Sequence record: MN794232.1
Strand: one strand, 5' to 3'
Length of the DNA: 64,000 nt
Positions 44,490 to 63,039 of this stretch are shown here, in pieces. The first letter of the stretch is position 1, and every line of letters begins with the position of its first letter. Under the pieces are notes generated by a model. It was not told the DNA's origin. It saw only the letters and a list, made by a program, of their open reading frames with translations, and made no database searches. The position numbers and the translations under genes are program-made.

Positions 44490-45929
44490 TTAAAAGCTGT
44501 AGCGATCAACGCCTACAGTTTTCAGCATGATCTTGACTGGCTCAAGCTCACCACCTAACAATGAAGTCAGGATAGATGGGCTACAACCCGATACCAGTGC
44601 AGTACCCGCTTCGCCAGCTTTAACCGGAACGTTGCCAAGACGACCACGAATGTTCCAGAAGACTAGTTGTGGCATTTCATAGCCAGCACGTGCGTACATA
44701 GCTTTGATTGCGTCGAAGTTTGCACGTTCGCCGCGACCGTACCAACCACCACCAGTATTTGCTTGGTCGAATTCCATGTCGCTCATGATAAGCAACTTAG
44801 TTGGCATTTCTTCTTGTGAAAGATTTGCACGTTTTGCACGCTCTAACAGAACGTTGAAGCACTTACCGATGTTTGTGCTCATGTCTTCACCTGAGCGATT
44901 CATGTTGTCAAGACGCTCTTTTAGTGAGCTACCGCGCAACTGGTGGAAGTGCGGATCGCTTGAGAACGAAATGAACTGATCTTTGAAGATTCCTTCATTG
45001 CGTTCAGCAACATAGATGCCAAGAGACATTGCAACTTGCTTACAAGTCACGCCAGAACGATCTGTACCTGCGTTGATTGGCGTGCTCATAGAGCCAGATA
45101 CGTCAACAACAGGGATGATGCGCTCATCAGAGCCTTCCATGTAGTTCGGCAGAGCTTTCCATTGCTCGTTCGCTACAGACGCATTGCCATGACTAACGCT
45201 CTTAACGACATCATATGGGAACAATGCACCAGCGTTGATCTTCGCTTCACCTTTTTGAAGTGACTCGATGTAGCTTGTGTAACGAGCAGAAGCGTTACGA
45301 CCGAATGCTTGTTGATAACGAGCAGACGCTACAGATGGCAACTTACCAAAGTCGATTGCATCCCATTCTTGCGCACACATCTTCTGTTCAACAGTGTCAG
45401 ACAAAAGTGCTAGAATCTTACGCCACTGCTTCGCAGTTACACCAAGAGACTTGATTGTGCGCTTGAACACATGACCGTTTTTGCTGTTTTCACGTGGGAA
45501 CCACTTAGCAGCAAGACTATTCTTGTCGTTTACAATCGCGTTTGACCACAATGTGATCGCGTCTTTCTCAAGTCTTGTACCGAACGCAGAAATCAAGTCG
45601 TCGAAACGACCTAGTTCTGGAATTTTCGACATTACAGCACGAGCTACGTCAGGCTGCTCATTACAAAGCTTAGTGAATAGAGTACGGAAAGTACCACGTT
45701 CACCCGCACCACCGCGAACATCACGAGACCACAAAAGAATGCGTGTCGCTAGTTCTGGGTTTTCTGCAAACGCACGACCGAACAGTGTTTTAGACTGATC
45801 GTTGCCACGCATAGCAGCAATACCGAAGAACAAGTTTAGACACTCGTTACCTGAAGTGCTGTGAGTAACTGCACCGTTTGCTGTACGTGAATCGTTTGAT
45901 TGCATAGCGTTCATAAATAGACTAGTCAT
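44490..45929 (-). CDS. TROVE-like DUF2828 / vWA protein (Ro60-related architecture)
   Basis: TANGA...SG..CLNLFF, RDVRGGAGER, AAKWFPR, MIDAS DVSGSM, MSTN, SDMEFD, VFWN; start set by GGAG SD. Confidence 0.8.
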   Translation of the reverse strand: MTSLFMNAMQSNDSRTANGAVTHSTSGNECLNLFFGIAAMRGNDQSKTLFGRAFAENPELATRILLWSRDVRGGAGERGTFRTLFTKLCNEQPDVARAVMSKIPELGRFDDLISAFGTRLEKDAITLWSNAIVNDKNSLAAKWFPRENSKNGHVFKRTIKSLGVTAKQWRKILALLSDTVEQKMCAQEWDAIDFGKLPSVASARYQQAFGRNASARYTSYIESLQKGEAKINAGALFPYDVVKSVSHGNASVANEQWKALPNYMEGSDERIIPVVDVSGSMSTPINAGTDRSGVTCKQVAMSLGIYVAERNEGIFKDQFISFSSDPHFHQLRGSSLKERLDNMNRSGEDMSTNIGKCFNVLLERAKRANLSQEEMPTKLLIMSDMEFDQANTGGGWYGRGERANFDAIKAMYARAGYEMPQLVFWNIRGRLGNVPVKAGEAGTALVSGCSPSILTSLLGGELEPVKIMLKTVGVDRYSF

Positions 45930-45962
45930 TGCTGTAAGCTCCATTATCAAGGATCAAAAAAT

Positions 45963-51818: not shown

Positions 51819-52149
51819 AAGAGCCTTTCGGCTCTTTTAATTTGCAGAAACAAAAAAACCTGCTCAAGGCAGGTTTAGATGTGCAATACACAGACATTCG
51901 AGAATTGTTTTATCGTCTTTCCTTAAATCTCAATTGACTATCTCGATGTTTCTCATCAAGAGAATACCCATGATTCGGCATGAGACCTATTTCGTTTTAC
52001 AGTACGAACACCGTCTTAATGGTCATTTCCTACCACGAGAATGCGACAGGCTCACGTCATCACTGAGAAAGCAGCTAGTGCGCCTCATTACTATTAAAGT
52101 TTGCTTCTTTGATTAGTAATAGTTGCTGTACAATGTCTTATTGCGAATT

Positions 52150-54475: not shown

Positions 54476-54576
54476 AGAGAGAATCTTTCCTTTCAAGCTG
54501 CGCCGAAGCACTACCCAGGTTAAGATCATCACTTCTTTTAAGTAATTTTCAATTGTTTGCTGTATATTGTCTCTCT
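54476..54576 (-). ncRNA. CAGCAA-module RNA G
   Basis: AGAGAGA/TCTCTCT closing stem, ATACAGCAAACAAT. Confidence 0.6.
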
Positions 54577-54786: not shown

Positions 54787-54861
54787 TGGTGGACACGCAG
54801 GGAGTCGAACCCTATCCTCCTCATTGCAAGTGAGGCGCTTTCCCAATTAAGCTAACGGCCC
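54787..54861 (-). tRNA. tRNA-Ala(TGC), imperfect acceptor stem
   Basis: G3-U70 present; stem pairs only with a bulge. Confidence 0.75.
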
Positions 54862-55105: not shown

Positions 55106-55181
55106 TGGTGCCCTGACACGGATTTGAACCGCGAACCTGCTCATTACAAGTGAGCTGCACTGCCAGTTGTGCTATCAGGGC
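55106..55181 (-). tRNA. tRNA-Thr(TGT)
   Basis: cloverleaf, CCA. Confidence 0.93.
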
Positions 55182-55187
55182 GTTACT

Positions 55188-55300
55188 GAGTGTTATTACT
55201 TGCGTCGTCCAGACCAGAGATACCAACTCTGAAAGGGAATCGAACCCCAAACATTTCTTTTCGTAAGAAGAATATTAGTAATTGTTTGCTGAAAACACTC
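55188..55300 (-). ncRNA. circularly permuted tRNA mimic (YrlA-like) RNA F
   Basis: terminal stem, CAGCAAACA bulge, inner stem, variable-like hairpin, T arm, capped acceptor hairpin, D-like hairpin. Confidence 0.75.
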
Positions 55301-55309
55301 TTCGGTATT

Positions 55310-55383
55310 TGGCAGGGGATAACGGATTCGAACCGGTACTGCGTGAGTCAAAGTCACGTATGCTGCCTTTACATCAATCCCCT
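55310..55383 (-). tRNA. tRNA-Gln(TTG)
   Basis: cloverleaf, CCA. Confidence 0.92.
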
Positions 55384-55550: not shown

Positions 55551-55626
55551 TGGCGGACCGCCCGAGACTCGAACTCGGAACTCCTCGCTTAACAGGCGAG
55601 CACTCTAACCATTGAGTTAGCGATCC
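55551..55626 (-). tRNA. tRNA-Asn(GTT)
   Basis: cloverleaf, CCA. Confidence 0.93.
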
Positions 55627-56000
55627 ATATTCTTTTGTAATGCGTGTTCTTCACGATGGCAGTTAGAACAAAGCATAATGCACTTATCTAACTCAGTTTC
55701 GATTCTCGACCATGATATAGTCTGACTAGAGATACCGAAATCTTTCTCGTTTGGATCAAGATGATGAAACTCTAATGCTTCAATGCATCTATCATACCCG
55801 CATCGTTCACAACAACCACCTTTATATTCAACGGCTCTTAGTTTAGCACGCTTTCTATAAGAAATGACTGCTTCTTTATTCTTTCGTTTTCGTTCAGCAT
55901 CAGTGTGCTTTCGTCGATTCTTACCGTTGTATAAACCAGCACATCGACGACTACAGAATTTATTAAGTGCGTCTGCACCACACTCTAAGCATTTATTCAT
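55617..56000 (-). mobile_element. HNH endonuclease in tRNA cluster
   Basis: CLEC..CSRRC; CERCG...LEFHHLDP...LCSNCHREEH. Confidence 0.85.
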
Positions 56001-56144
56001 TTTTTGAGTTACCTATTTAAGTTTAAAAGATAACTCAGTGATAAAGTGTTTAGGCGCCACATTCGTAAGTGAATGACTCTATTACTACTTAGCAATTACA
56101 TTCAAGCGTTACCAAGAATCATGCCACGTAGCTTTAAATTAAAC

Positions 56145-56202
56145 AGCAATCCTTTTCTCTTTTTGCAAATAAAAGTTTTGTATTGTTTGCTGAAAGATTG
56201 CT
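56145..56202 (-). ncRNA. minimal CAGCAA-module RNA H
   Basis: AGCAATC/GATTGCT stem, TTTCAGCAAACAAT. Confidence 0.55.
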
Positions 56203-58574: not shown

Positions 58575-58690
58575 TGGTAGTCGGGGCTGGATTCGAACCA
58601 GCGACCACGTGCTTAACAGGCAATTGAAGGAGTGCTGGAGCGATACTTGACAGTATCATTCTTCGTGCTCTACCACTGAGCTACCCGACT
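58575..58690 (-). ncRNA. tRNA-Asn-like RNA A with 41-nt insertion in anticodon stem
   Basis: removing the insert gives a perfect 75-nt tRNA-Asn(GTT) with CCA. Confidence 0.85.
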
Positions 58691-60240: not shown

Positions 60241-60360
60241 TGGTGGAGAGTGATGGATTTGAACCACCGACCAAAAGATTTACCAGTTAAGGTTTGCAGC
60301 ATGAATGCTTGTCAGTATTCTTTAACATTCTTTTGCTCTACCAGACTGAGCTAACTCTCC
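60241..60360 (-). ncRNA. tRNA-like RNA B with 50-nt structured anticodon loop
   Basis: canonical acceptor, D and T arms and CCA; AAAGA/TCTTT stem encloses module. Confidence 0.85.
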
Positions 60361-60365
60361 ATTGT

Positions 60366-60476
60366 ATTACTACTTTGTTTCGCTTGTCAGGGCGTCGAAA
60401 CGCTACCTAACCAAGGATTCGAACCTTTTAACCAACACCTCGCGAAAATTATTTTTCTCGTTGGCAAAGTAGTAAT
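60366..60476 (-). ncRNA. second permuted tRNA mimic RNA J
   Basis: 12-bp terminal stem, hairpin, AAGG-TTCGAAT-CCTT T arm, UUCG-capped hairpin. Confidence 0.6.
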
Positions 60477-60487
60477 GTAAAAACATA

Positions 60488-60613
60488 TAGTTGCGGGTGC
60501 AGGATTCGAACCTACATCACGATCTTATGAATGATATGCGAAATTGATTGCCGTACAGATTCTTATCAGAATCAGTTTTGTGCTACGTGTGCTACCACTT
60601 ACACCAACCCGCA
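60488..60613 (-). ncRNA. tRNA-like RNA C with module insertion
   Basis: D and T arms canonical; 15-bp terminal stem 60484-60621; ends ACTA, not CCA. Confidence 0.8.
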
Positions 60614-60882
60614 ACTATATGCTTTCGGGATGCTTACGCAGGTTCTTCTCTACGTAAGCACAGTTCCTCAATGTATATTTTGCCTTAGCCAATCACAACA
60701 CAACCCAACCCAATATCGTGCGCTTTAATTACGGGATTGATGACCCGTTCGCATGTGATTAGCGTAAAAGTATGATTACGCACCTTTTCTTCTTCAATGT
60801 CCAAGGCAAAGAGGACTATGAATACTAGTGCGAGAAGATATACAATCAAATTGCTCACCTCGCTTAATAAGTGAGAGTACAT

Positions 60883-61005
60883 TGGTCGAGTGTAACGGAA
60901 TCGAACCGTTCCCACGATCTCCCTATGATATGCGTAAATTGGTTGCTGAATATAATCATGTCTGATTACAGTATGCTACGTGTGCTGCCACTACACCAAC
61001 ACTCG
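60883..61005 (-). ncRNA. tRNA-like RNA D with module insertion
   Basis: paralog of C; CCA present; 21-bp perfect inverted repeat 60873-60893/60999-61019. Confidence 0.82.
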
Positions 61006-61422: not shown

Positions 61423-61677
61423 TTAAACGGAAATGATAATGCCGCTTTCAGTCTCACCTCGTTCAAGCGCAGCGTGCTTGATCTGAAGTTGTGATACTGC
61501 TTGCTGAAGTTCAATAATAGCTTTGTCATAAAGCTTGTTGTTCTCTTTAAGCAAAGCAATCTGATCGGTCTGCATACCAATGATGTACGTTAGTAGAACA
61601 ACGTTCTCATCAGTCGTCAGCGTTTCAGGCGCTTCATTGTACTTCTTCAGCACCGCTTCGGTAGATAGATCAGTCAT
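61423..61677 (-). CDS. hypothetical coiled-coil protein
   Basis: coupled to 57B. Confidence 0.65.
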   Translation of the reverse strand: MTDLSTEAVLKKYNEAPETLTTDENVVLLTYIIGMQTDQIALLKENNKLYDKAIIELQQAVSQLQIKHAALERGETESGIIISV

Positions 61678-62125
61678 TATTAGCAACCCATTCTAGATCT
61701 AGTGGTTCGATATATTCATCGACAAGGCGAACCTCTGTATTGATGAACATAGGTGTGATTACGTCGTCATAAGATAATGTGACGTGCGGAGTATAGTCAG
61801 GGTAATCGTGAGTACCACCGATAGAGATAAGGTCTTCGTGACGTTCTACAAGAGCAGGACATGACATCTTAGCAACGACCGCGTGTTTACCGTCTTGCGT
61901 TTTCCAACAGTCAACTTGTTCAACAGTGGCAACGAAAGTGGTATCTACAACAGGCACATCAATTTGCTTACGACTATAAAGCACAGTCACGTGAAATTTA
62001 TCTGGATCTAACGGATTTTTTAGACGAAGCGTTTTTTGCAAGCGAACTAGCTCTTGCTTACTTGCTTCGTCTAATTTGATACCAACGTAAGTTCCCTGAC
62101 TCTCAAGGAACTTAGATAGTTTCAT
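61670..62125 (-). CDS. 57B: gp57B / Acb1-like 2H phosphoesterase
   Basis: two HxT motifs (HVTVLYS, HVTLSY); synteny with 57A and 1. Confidence 0.88.
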   Translation of the reverse strand: MKLSKFLESQGTYVGIKLDEASKQELVRLQKTLRLKNPLDPDKFHVTVLYSRKQIDVPVVDTTFVATVEQVDCWKTQDGKHAVVAKMSCPALVERHEDLISIGGTHDYPDYTPHVTLSYDDVITPMFINTEVRLVDEYIEPLDLEWVANND

Positions 62126-62400: not shown

Positions 62401-63039
62401 TTAAAATAATTTGTTGATTTGTTCATGTAGTTCTTCAAGAGAACCATTATTGTCTATTTGAATTGCGTCTTCAATAAAACCCAATTCAGTATCGCTAACG
62501 TGATTAGATGCAAGCGAACCTTCTCGGTTAACTTGAAGCATCGTGCCACCAAGCTCTTGTACCAATTCTAATTCGTTTTGAAAACGAACATCAGTGATTA
62601 TAAACACCAAATCCGGGTTTTTAAACACTAGCTCATTGTATTTATTACGTGCGTAATTGATCCAATGTTGTTCATCAAGCGAACGTGCAACGTCAGTGCC
62701 AGTCATTTGCAGTAAATCACGAATGCTGAACAGTTTCGTGTGAGGGAGCAACGTGTAGTAGACATAATCATAATCAGCGTCTACATTTGCGTACTCACAA
62801 CAAGTCAAAACAAGTTCAATTGCTTCGTCGAGGGTAAATGTCGGGACTTCTCTATCAAAATTGTTTTGCCCGTCGATGTCTGCATACTCATAGCCATATT
62901 CTTTCAATCCAATGTACAAACCCTCTTTAATCGGGTCTGCAAACTTGTAAATGTAAGCATTATCACTATGAATATCTTGAATGGCTTGAGCTACAGTATC
63001 TTTGCCTGAGCGTTTTTGTCCATTTATTCCTATTATCAT
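62401..63039 (-). CDS. 1: deoxynucleoside monophosphate kinase gp1
   Basis: GQKRSGKDT, FADPIK, RDLLQMTGT, ITDVRF.NE. Confidence 0.93.
   Translation of the reverse strand: MIIGINGQKRSGKDTVAQAIQDIHSDNAYIYKFADPIKEGLYIGLKEYGYEYADIDGQNNFDREVPTFTLDEAIELVLTCCEYANVDADYDYVYYTLLPHTKLFSIRDLLQMTGTDVARSLDEQHWINYARNKYNELVFKNPDLVFIITDVRFQNELELVQELGGTMLQVNREGSLASNHVSDTELGFIEDAIQIDNNGSLEELHEQINKLF

Follow-up and report, generated by a model that had tools for sequence, protein, structure and literature searches.

RNA F is a 113-nucleotide (nt) element encoded on the minus strand of a 64,000-nt stretch of sequence record MN794232.1 (the window, meaning the whole stretch that was analysed), where it lies at 55188–55300 within a cluster of tRNA genes. 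The whole window matches Vibrio phage VH1_2019 (genus Schizotequatrovirus), a T4-like phage of the KVP40 type, at 100% identity. Comparison with related phages confirms that RNA F is a real, conserved structured RNA. Its arms follow the order of a tRNA opened at the anticodon side, and its two ends form a stem flanked by a conserved motif that recurs in RNAs beside Ro60-like genes of other phages. The same phage encodes a protein with a predicted Ro60-like fold on the same strand. We infer that RNA F binds and functions with this protein, probably as a tRNA-like Y RNA belonging to a sister family of YrlA and not to YrlA itself.

Fold and conservation of RNA F

The 27 tRNA genes that ARAGORN detects in the window are all minus-strand genes and span 52.1 to 59.9 kb; RNA F occupies the gap between two of them. 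All other tRNAs in the cluster, its neighbours included, encode CCA, whereas RNA F does not. The stems listed in the original prediction, which was made from the letters alone, are all present, and the reverse complement of 55188–55300 matches the RNA sequence given there exactly. The element, its neighbours and its parts (with RNA positions in parentheses) are as follows.

55188–55300, minus strand: RNA F, whole element of 113 nt, a permuted tRNA-like Y-type RNA delimited by sequence, covariance model and covariation
55310–55383, minus strand: tRNA-Gln(UUG), with its CCA end 9 nt upstream of RNA F
55106–55181, minus strand: tRNA-Thr(UGU), starting 6 nt downstream of RNA F
55294–55300, minus strand: 5′ strand of the closing stem P1, GAGUGUU (1–7), pairing with AACACUC at 55188–55194; invariant in KVP40-like phages
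55283–55293, minus strand: 11-nt bulge UUCAGCAAACA (8–18), holding the family motif UUNCAGCAA; proposed protein-binding site
55277–55282, minus strand: 5′ strand of stem P2, AUUACU (19–24), at the anticodon-stem position, pairing with 55195–55200
55255–55272, minus strand: V or anticodon-arm-like hairpin, UUCUU-CUUACGAA-AAGAA (29–46), recovered by RNAalifold
55233–55249, minus strand: T arm, (U)GGGG-UUCGAUU-CCCU(U) (52–68), with a canonical T loop
55215–55231, minus strand: acceptor-like hairpin, CAGAG-UUGGUAU-CUCUG (70–86), with a 7-nt loop and covarying pairs
55204–55214, minus strand: D-like hairpin, GUC-UGGAC-GAC (87–97), predicted by RNAalifold, with an invariant GG
55195–55200, minus strand: 3′ strand of P2, AGUAAU (101–106), pairing with AUUACU
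55188–55194, minus strand: 3′ strand of P1, AACACUC (107–113), preceded by AAU, where the family consensus is AAAUAC followed by P1

Single-sequence folding of RNA F is unremarkable (z = −1.17 on the minus strand versus z = −3.0 on the plus strand), and the case for the fold therefore rests on comparison. Relatives of RNA F were fetched at 96, 95, 93, 91, 89, 88, 85 and 75% identity, and 11 phages were aligned with MAFFT without structural guidance. In this alignment, standard pairs make up 95.4% of the pair cells, as against 45–66% when the 3′ partners are slid by 1–3 columns. Changes on both sides occur at six pairs, and the observed covariation score was reached by none of 500 shuffles. RNAalifold, unaided, recovers P1, the V hairpin, the T arm, the middle (acceptor-like) hairpin and the D-like hairpin. 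The T-stem pair 50–64, next to the loop-distal end, is G-U, A-U, C-G, G-C or U-A among relatives, and three of the five pairs of the acceptor-like hairpin are altered on both sides. For P2, the phage D482 shows two compensatory changes (UUUA/UAAA) after a one-column register shift made by eye, which the unguided alignment registers as one changed pair. The loop of the V hairpin is variable (6–8 nt of differing sequence).

A covariance model built from the relatives (R1) returns ends at exactly 55188–55300 with 130.9 bits and one copy per genome, which agrees with the 113-nt extent proposed originally. RNA F is present in 48 Vibrio phage records, in most of which the locus is unannotated and in a few of which a ‘hypothetical protein’ is called over it. 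A diverged copy in Vibrio phage 1.081.O occupies the same Gln–Thr site; its V stem (UUCGU/ACGAA) and T stem have new, compensatory sequences, and its 5′ end GAGUGUUUACAGCAAACAA and UUGGUAU loop are retained. Conservation in RNA F is highest at P1, the bulge and the T loop, not in the stems, and this is the pattern expected of a protein-binding site. A pattern scan of IMG/VR for the T loop plus UUGGUAU returned only KVP40 and VH7D besides chance matches to ordinary tRNAs.

These data bear on the idea that RNA F is decaying and functionless, a leftover of two tandemly duplicated tRNAs in which the 3′ half of the first copy is joined to the 5′ half of the second. Such an event is a plausible evolutionary origin: tandem Lys-Lys and Pro-Pro tRNAs in the cluster give weak matches of the same geometry to the Rfam YrlA model, which are chance alignments across the duplicated genes and the only YrlA matches in the window. 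As a description of the present RNA, the idea is very improbable. Four stems carry compensatory substitutions, the RNA keeps its site in relatives of 75% identity and even lower, and paired columns do not drift freely. Moreover, P1 and the bulge motif are not tRNA-derived and yet are the most conserved parts, and homologous RNAs occur in unrelated phage families (see below).

The sense strand is the minus strand, as for all 27 tRNAs, because of the G-U pairs and the T-loop sequence. The G-U pairs of the T stem, P1 and the D-like stem become A-C mismatches if read on the other strand. The plus-strand reading, in spite of its better thermodynamic fold, was rejected on these grounds; it also turns the T loop into AAUCGAA. 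A normal-order tRNA with P1 as acceptor stem was likewise rejected, as there is no CCA and the T arm falls at the anticodon position. ARAGORN and the Rfam tRNA model (RF00005) give no match to RNA F, which has no CCA, no anticodon loop and no normal arm order.

The order of a 3′ half followed by a 5′ half is also that of permuted tRNA genes, whose transcripts are circularised and re-cut to a working tRNA, as in the red alga Cyanidioschyzon. KVP40-type phages encode RNA ligases, which could be counted in favour of such a route. In the permuted tRNA genes of Cyanidioschyzon merolae, as in two-piece permuted tmRNA, the T arm and acceptor 3′ strand stand upstream of the acceptor 5′ strand and D arm, as they do in RNA F. 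Those RNAs, however, are matured to aminoacylatable molecules, whereas RNA F has a closed 5-bp acceptor stem with a 7-nt loop and neither CCA nor an anticodon, and its ends form a 7-bp stem in place of a junction anticodon loop. With ARAGORN and the Rfam tRNA model also negative, a permuted tRNA gene is barely credible here.

The Ro60-like protein and the RNAs linked to its gene

No TROVE domain (Pfam) is found among the 13 longest open reading frames (ORFs) of the window or among the ORFs around the tRNA cluster. This search led instead to a protein with the domains DUF2828 and DUF7788.

44490–45950, minus strand: Ro60-like gene, DUF2828 plus DUF7788 (vWA-like); the coding sequence in the record is 44490–45929 (479 amino acids) and the longest ORF 44490–45950 (486 amino acids, TTG start)

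The Pfam matches to DUF2828 and DUF7788 have E-values of 1e-45 and 8e-30, with a faint vWA signal, and the protein falls in PHROG 850, ‘RNA-binding protein’. A sequence search of the PDB gave only spurious armadillo-repeat matches, and a fold search was needed. An AlphaFold2 model was made from a 37-sequence alignment (pLDDT 76.7). The six best Foldseek matches of this model in the PDB are all Ro60 (Thermus phage phiLo Ro60, Xenopus Ro and human Ro60), with E-values of 3e-8 to 4e-6 over ~500 aligned columns, so that the predicted fold corresponds to Ro60 from end to end, and phiLo Ro60 (9l5y) is the top match. The matches that follow are vWA domains only (E > 1e-3). On this predicted model, the phage encodes a Ro60-shaped protein, comprising a helical ring and a vWA domain, on the same strand as RNA F. 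The DUF2828 family is found in 710 phage records with widely differing hosts, and some mycobacteriophage annotators label the protein ‘Ro-like RNA binding protein’. The stretch between a GGAG ribosome-binding site and the AUG annotated for the Ro60-like gene contains the motif UUACAGCAA (45929–45936, minus strand), which may be there by chance or may serve autoregulation as a binding site; this 8-mer is found 21 times over the window versus 13 expected and is not enriched.

The RNAs related to RNA F share a 5′ module, in which a 7-bp P1 is followed by UUNCAGCAA and closed by AAUAC and the 3′ strand of P1. The family pattern, to which RNA F conforms, is a 7-bp P1, 1–3 nt, NCAGCAA, an A-rich tail (often AAAUAC) and the complementary strand. 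In unrelated phages (Felix O1-like, LeBron, Listeria, Staphylococcus, Campylobacter and cyanophage), the module recurs beside the Ro60-like gene, in one to four RNAs arranged in tandem. In the tRNA cluster of the Felix O1-like phage wV8, R1 matches at one place (E = 2.7e-6), which reads as follows.

wV8 RNA: GACCGUU-UACAGCAAAAC-CUUAA...UUUCU-CCGGUAA-AGAAA-AGGC-GAAGG-UUCGAUU-CCUUC-ACUCGGC-AGAU-GUCGAGU-U-G-GUGU-AAUGGUA-GCAC-U-UUAAG-AUGAUAAAC-AACGGUC

The P1 of the wV8 RNA is unlike that of RNA F and yet fully complementary, and the bulge motif UACAGCAA is shared. A tetraloop-closed acceptor stem of 7 bp directly follows the T stem, and then come U8 and N9, a 4-bp D arm with A14, GG and A21, N26 and a 5-bp stem at the anticodon position. 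Judged from its sequence, the body of this RNA reads as a textbook tRNA opened at the anticodon side. RNAs of the wV8 type are conserved in 248 Ounavirinae records.

A scan of IMG/VR with the pattern GTTTNCAGCAA, a gap of 28–50 nt and GTTCGANTC yielded 69 loci, ~50 of which have a perfect 7-nt P1 partner 43–60 nt after the T loop. The RNAs so closed are 105–130 nt long and use at least 10 different P1 sequences, all fully complementary. In the members that were parsed, a T stem of 5/5 pairs is joined by a 0-nt link to a closed acceptor stem of 6–8 bp, followed by a link of 1–2 nt (UA or AA), a D arm with GG, often GCUC-AGUUGGUA-GAGC, and an A-rich tail ending in AAAUAC before the 3′ strand of P1. 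When 17 diverse members are aligned without guidance, CAGCAA and the T loop are invariant; RNAalifold finds five of six P1 pairs and four of five T-stem pairs compensatory, and recovers the D stem. Iteration of R1 over the diverse loci was dropped because of partial recovery and poor alignment, and a motif-plus-closure scanner with per-sequence parsing was used in its place. By sequence, RNA F is a somewhat eroded member of this proposed DUF2828-associated Y-type RNA family, and its distant relatives display the permuted tRNA more clearly.

Genes called ‘hypothetical protein’ lie over Y-type RNAs on the opposite strand in wV8 (gp048, locus L025 14371–14628), QD01 and D482, and on either strand elsewhere; these calls are probably spurious. 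A scan of 185,579 bacterial and archaeal genomes of GTDB with the family pattern showed no convincing member by eye among the matches listed (at least 120 loci). The 20 G-U-tolerant closed-stem matches displayed resemble chance in ordinary sequence and were taken as a negative control. Among the matches listed, the tRNA-like form of the family thus looks phage-restricted.

The RNAs and the DUF2828 gene are linked in the genome. By tblastn, 35 of the IMG/VR loci have a DUF2828 gene, in every case on the strand of the RNA. In 11 loci outside the Felix-like and KVP40-like groups, the gene begins 212–658 nt after the 5′ end of the RNA. It begins 1.9 kb after that end in one further locus (L055), and in another (L041) the gene comes first and the RNA follows ~400 nt downstream. 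Felix-like phages have the RNA ~1 kb downstream of the gene; in wV8, 165 nt separate the end of the gene from the first tRNA of the cluster.

The reverse test gives a consistent picture. Six lineages were picked solely for carrying a DUF2828 protein, and the gene neighbourhoods were scanned for a 7-bp stem, 1–3 nt, NCAGCAA and closure within 150 nt; shuffled controls give 0.03–0.3 matches per locus. In four of the six (LP-064, PC5, CF9 and LeBron), one to three tandem RNAs with P1 and NCAGCAA lie within ~350 nt of the gene and on its strand. The arrangements, together with that of wV8, are as follows.

Listeria LP-064: three tandem RNAs, immediately upstream of the DUF2828 gene
Campylobacter PC5: two tandem RNAs, immediately upstream of the DUF2828 gene
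Staphylococcus CF9: three tandem RNAs, immediately downstream of the DUF2828 gene
Mycobacteriophage LeBron: three tandem RNAs, the middle one tRNA-like, then a terminator, immediately downstream of the DUF2828 gene
Cyanophage B23: RNAs on both sides, one with P1 and motif upstream and, identified by eye on the downstream side, a further one and a tRNA-like RNA that bears the motif
Pseudomonas Milchi: no scanner match on the strand of the gene; by eye, a small hairpin with UCCAGCAA in the loop, downstream and before tRNA-Arg
wV8 (Felix O1-like): four RNAs, one reading as a textbook permuted tRNA, in the tRNA cluster downstream of the DUF2828 gene

Listeria phage LP-064 also has a gene for an RtcB-like RNA ligase (locus L093 5358–6509) 1.3 kb downstream of the Ro60-like gene and the three tandem RNAs, an arrangement that echoes the Salmonella rsr-yrlBA-rtcBA operon.

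The closest known relatives in kind are the YrlA RNAs, which adjoin Ro60 genes and mimic tRNA; TruB and DusA modify them, making pseudouridine-55 and dihydrouridine, and RNase P cuts one of them (PMC4201824). The order in RNA F of closing stem, V hairpin, T arm, closed acceptor-like hairpin, D-like hairpin with GG and closing stem is supported by covariation and is the YrlA order (PMC4201824). The original prediction, a class II tRNA mimic in YrlA-like order, is thus borne out for the order. Its class II label, which makes the V hairpin a variable arm, is ambiguous; this hairpin and the 5-nt linker before the T arm also fit an anticodon arm and a class I variable loop, as partial R1 matches to ordinary tRNAs indicate. 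RNA F further shares with YrlA the T loop (UUCRA; here UUCGAUU) and the D-loop GG (UGGAC), both in invariant columns. Other common traits are the terminal 5′–3′ stem with a conserved protein-binding module, the succession of an optional V hairpin, T arm, loop-closed acceptor-like stem and D arm, the location on the same strand as a Ro60-type gene and the frequent tandem arrangement with a second, shorter Y RNA. The differences lie in the module and its protein. In YrlA, GNCGAAN0-1G, the likely Ro60-binding signature (Chen et al., 2014; PMC4201824), stands inside the stem, whereas the 5′ motif UUNCAGCAA of RNA F stands beside a variable P1. The associated protein has DUF2828/DUF7788 instead of TROVE, and the acceptor and D arms of RNA F are shortened. 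A YrlA gene would also be expected within ~4 kb of a TROVE-domain Ro60 gene on its strand, whereas the Ro60-fold DUF2828 gene is 9.4 kb from RNA F.

RNA F might nonetheless be YrlA proper, partnered by a canonical TROVE-domain Ro60/Rsr that is possibly the host's. The arm order and the T and D features would agree with this, as would a sub-threshold match of a relative: the Rfam YrlA model (RF02553, gathering threshold 69 bits) scores 39.8 bits against the tRNA-like RNA of LeBron (E = 1.7e-7 in that search), aligning the T arm, acceptor hairpin and D arm. RNA F itself, for which a search with this model had been suggested as one check, gives no YrlA match even at E ≤ 10 on 126 nt alone. This failure, the lack of GNCGAAN0-1G, the lack of TROVE among the ORFs scanned and the co-variation of the family with DUF2828 genes instead make membership of YrlA improbable. 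The LeBron alignment ties the architecture to bona fide Ro60-bound RNAs and suggests that YrlA and the new family are of one kind and differ in their protein-binding modules.

Proposed ribonucleoprotein and points against it

RNA F would be a processed, stable non-coding RNA cut from a polycistronic tRNA transcript of the phage. Between 57.5 and 54 kb, no terminator-like site was found on the minus strand, and promoter-like sites lie upstream, suggesting that RNA F is probably freed from a tRNA precursor by tRNA-processing enzymes. RNase P cleavage at the start of tRNA-Thr(UGU) would then fix its 3′ end.

Two modules can be proposed. In the first, the 7-bp P1 with the 5′ bulge UUNCAGCAA and the 3′ AAUAC would dock the phage Ro60-like protein, by analogy with the stem-bulge-stem of Y RNA on Ro60; an invariant motif beside a freely covarying stem fits this proposal. 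The second is a tRNA look-alike opened at the anticodon-stem side, whose T loop and D-loop GG presumably form a tRNA elbow. It would offer a tRNA-shaped surface that recruits or distracts a tRNA-recognising factor; this could be a nuclease, a modification enzyme or part of host defence. Together, RNA and protein would form a ribonucleoprotein (RNP) that acts like bacterial Ro60–YrlA particles in RNA surveillance, repair or decay, and the phage would probably use it against host defence.

Several observations weigh against this reading. RNA F and the Ro60-like gene are on the same strand of the same genome, separated by 9.4 kb here, 6.4 kb in the KVP40 locus and 7.8 kb in the VH7D locus. The adjacency within ~1 kb that holds in other lineages is thus absent from this phage, and the linkage of RNA and gene in the KVP40-like lineage amounts only to co-presence. 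Co-occurrence was estimated from sampled loci out of the 710 DUF2828-bearing phage records. The resemblance to Ro60 is one of predicted fold (TM ~0.55), with 12–15% identity. RNA F is degenerate relative to other family members, in that its acceptor-like stem is 5 bp, its D-like stem 3 bp with a 5-nt loop, and its 8–9 linker missing; with this minimal D-like arm and missing linker, a true tRNA-like L shape is not assured. Rfam 15 gives no match at RNA F at gathering thresholds, at E ≤ 10 over 10 kb or at E ≤ 10 on 126 nt, and where YrlA has GNCGAAN0-1G, the 5′ region of RNA F reads GAGUGUUUUCAGCAAACAAUUACU with the invariant CAGCAA instead. Lastly, the near-invariant UUGGUAU loop falls outside what the two modules account for.

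This loop and the genomic position can be explained differently, if RNA F mimics tRNA in a functional role of its own, independent of the Ro60-like protein. It could be a decoy or sponge for a host tRNA-targeting nuclease or for a modifying or aminoacylating enzyme, or a scaffold or processing signal of the tRNA operon. RNA F sits inside that operon, 9 and 6 nt from its neighbours, and the Ro60-like gene is 9.4 kb away. The 5-bp stem with the UUGGUAU loop resembles the anticodon arm of tRNA-Thr(GGU), with U and A as its second and sixth loop nucleotides (tRNA positions 33 and 37), and the loop is near-invariant while its stem covaries. Against this, the loop is limited to the vibriophage clade, and ValKK3-type phages have C at the U33 position. 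The acceptor-stem loops of other family members are unrelated to it (3–10 nt), and a tRNA-Thr(GGU) anticodon-arm mimic was therefore set aside as a clade-specific oddity. The part conserved in all lineages is the P1/ACAGCAA module, which tracks the Ro60-like gene even in RNAs without a tRNA domain. A protein-independent mimic is accordingly rather unlikely, and a Y RNA partner of the Ro60-like protein is the preferred reading.

Further module-bearing RNAs and significance

The module of RNA F is found in other RNAs of the window.

58578–58690, 60244–60360 and 60497–60622, minus strand: long tRNA-like RNAs (RNAs A–D), ‘tRNA-Pseudo-3/4’ in KVP40
56145–56202, minus strand: candidate for a short second Y-type RNA, matched by the scanner; it lacks a tRNA domain and has P1 AGCAAUC/GAUUGCU, UUUCAGCAAAC and an A-rich tail

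RNAs A–D have open acceptor stems with CCA and the normal arm order. Their anticodon-arm region holds a hairpin of 6–7 bp capped by GUCA, GACA or GAUA (GNYA), with AAAC or AAU before it and AUUCAGCAAC after it. This last sequence is exact in D482 and 1.081.O; elsewhere it is CUGCAA, CGGCAA or CCAGCAC, of the type (A/U)UNC(A/U/G)GCAA. The hairpin stems covary between phages. The series AAAC, stem, GNYA, stem and AUUCAGCAAC of RNAs A–D is the terminal module of RNA F with its ends joined by a loop, and the earlier claim that RNA F is a topological permutation of RNAs A–D is therefore correct. At 58578–58690, removal of 41 nt would leave a perfect anticodon arm of tRNA-Asn(GUU), CGUGC-CUGUUAA-GCACG. 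The record of 1.081.O annotates the ortholog of 60244–60360, one of its two long tRNA-like genes, as tRNA-Asn. A spacer of 6 nt separates the RNA at 56145–56202 from the CCA of tRNA-Trp before it. This RNA is conserved in KVP40 and overlaps a weak R1 match (56092–56201); it looks like a ‘YrlB-type’ companion of RNA F.

Other stretches of the minus strand have related features. At 54476–54576, a stem AGAGAGA/UCUCUCU encloses ~87 nt that start with CAAUAUACAGCAAAC; its 4-nt spacer is outside the 1–3 nt of the scanner, and it may be a third module-bearing RNA. A weak full-length R1 match at 60837–60957 (17.3 bits, E 0.08) has AUAUUCAGCAAC and the T arm AACGG-UUCGAUU-CCGUU, and is possibly a second, more diverged permuted tRNA-like RNA. 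The region 60365–60490 also looks permuted, with a 12-bp closing stem AUUACUACUUUG/CAAAGUAGUAAU that includes AUUACU/AGUAAU as in P2 of RNA F, a hairpin, the T arm AAGG-UUCGAAU-CCUU and a stem-loop with CUGACAAG in its loop. Just after tRNA-Ser(GCU), AAGACAUUGUACAGCAACUAUUACU lies at 52100–52135, and a counterpart in 1.081.O (locus L024 15218–15366) closes after ~149 nt; this is possibly a further, longer module-bearing RNA.

Elsewhere in the cluster, a tRNA at 54790–54861 on the minus strand (Rfam 45.7 bits) is missed by ARAGORN, unannotated in VH1_2019 and called ‘tRNA-Pseudo-1’ in KVP40. An HNH endonuclease ORF (55617–56000, minus strand) lies in a stretch that is variable among relatives, as seen from coverage gaps, and is probably a mobile homing endonuclease. 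The ORF at 61670–62125 on the minus strand matches Pfam Acb1 (E 2e-46), a 2H phosphoesterase that counters CBASS; by synteny it corresponds to T4 57B, and it adjoins a dNMP kinase gene (62401–63039) and a tail-tube-like gene. In T4 itself, rnaC and rnaD (species 1 and 2) are likewise small stable RNAs of the tRNA cluster with no function assigned and are syntenic near 57B, gene 1 and gene 3, and rnaC resembles RNA F in having a T arm at its end. They differ in their normal order, in that no P1/ACAGCAA module was seen and in giving no covariance-model match.

Two published phage systems are closely related to the proposed RNP. Ro60 of Thermus phage phiLo, recognised as a Ro60 homolog by a UniProt search, binds two upstream Y-like stem-bulge-stem RNAs and, with them, host PNPase (PMC12135203). 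As in the family of RNA F, a phage Ro60-type protein is accompanied by tandem Y-like RNAs with a short conserved bulge motif in a stem-bulge-stem. In phiLo, however, the motif is CGAA, and the available part of that paper describes Yrl1 and Yrl2 as stem-bulge-stem RNAs and mentions no tRNA-like domain (PMC12135203). In the Felixounavirus Bas63, the Ro60-like gp130, encoded upstream of tRNA genes, counters the Ppl defence, and its authors guessed that some of the neighbouring tRNA genes may be Y RNAs (10.1101/2024.10.10.617714). No RNA partner was identified in that work (10.1101/2024.10.10.617714). The gene for gp130 has the same position as the DUF2828 gene of wV8, directly upstream of a tRNA cluster with F-type RNAs, and this synteny suggests that the two are orthologs. 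The wV8-type RNAs are concrete candidates for the missing RNA partner of gp130.

The study of gp130 is the only functional one on phage Ro-like proteins of the DUF2828 type that was found in the literature searched. No description of RNA partners of these common proteins was found in Rfam or in that literature. The DUF2828-associated RNA family is therefore apparently undescribed, with the proviso that some actinophage members may already be listed as YrlA-like. In practical terms, hundreds of phage records leave these RNAs unannotated or under spurious ‘hypothetical protein’ calls on either strand.

RNA F is of interest to both RNA biology and phage-defence research. Bacterial Y RNAs and their tRNA-like domain are known, and the purpose of this tRNA mimicry is an open question in the field. 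The present analysis provides candidates with exact coordinates, which combine a covarying stem with a conserved putative binding motif. They occur in phages that are tractable (those of KVP40 type with Vibrio natriegens, those of Felix O1 type with E. coli K-12, and LeBron with M. smegmatis), so that the hypothesis is directly testable. In addition, one phage carries the same module in both tRNA topologies, a natural experiment that bears on which feature of tRNA shape is important.

More broadly, and only tentatively, we suggest that phages encoding DUF2828 proteins carry a repertoire of a ‘Y module’ (stem and ACAGCAA) on three chassis, forming an undescribed family of viral Ro-type RNPs. 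The chassis might be bare hairpins, permuted tRNA bodies such as RNA F, and normal-order tRNA bodies with CCA such as RNAs A–D, some of which may be chargeable. If this is true, the family would extend over at least 710 phage records, with hosts among Proteobacteria, Firmicutes, Actinobacteria, Campylobacterota and cyanobacteria, and viral Ro-type RNPs would link the mimicry of tRNA with RNA surveillance and with evasion of host defence, which in the case of Felix O1-like phages is Ppl.

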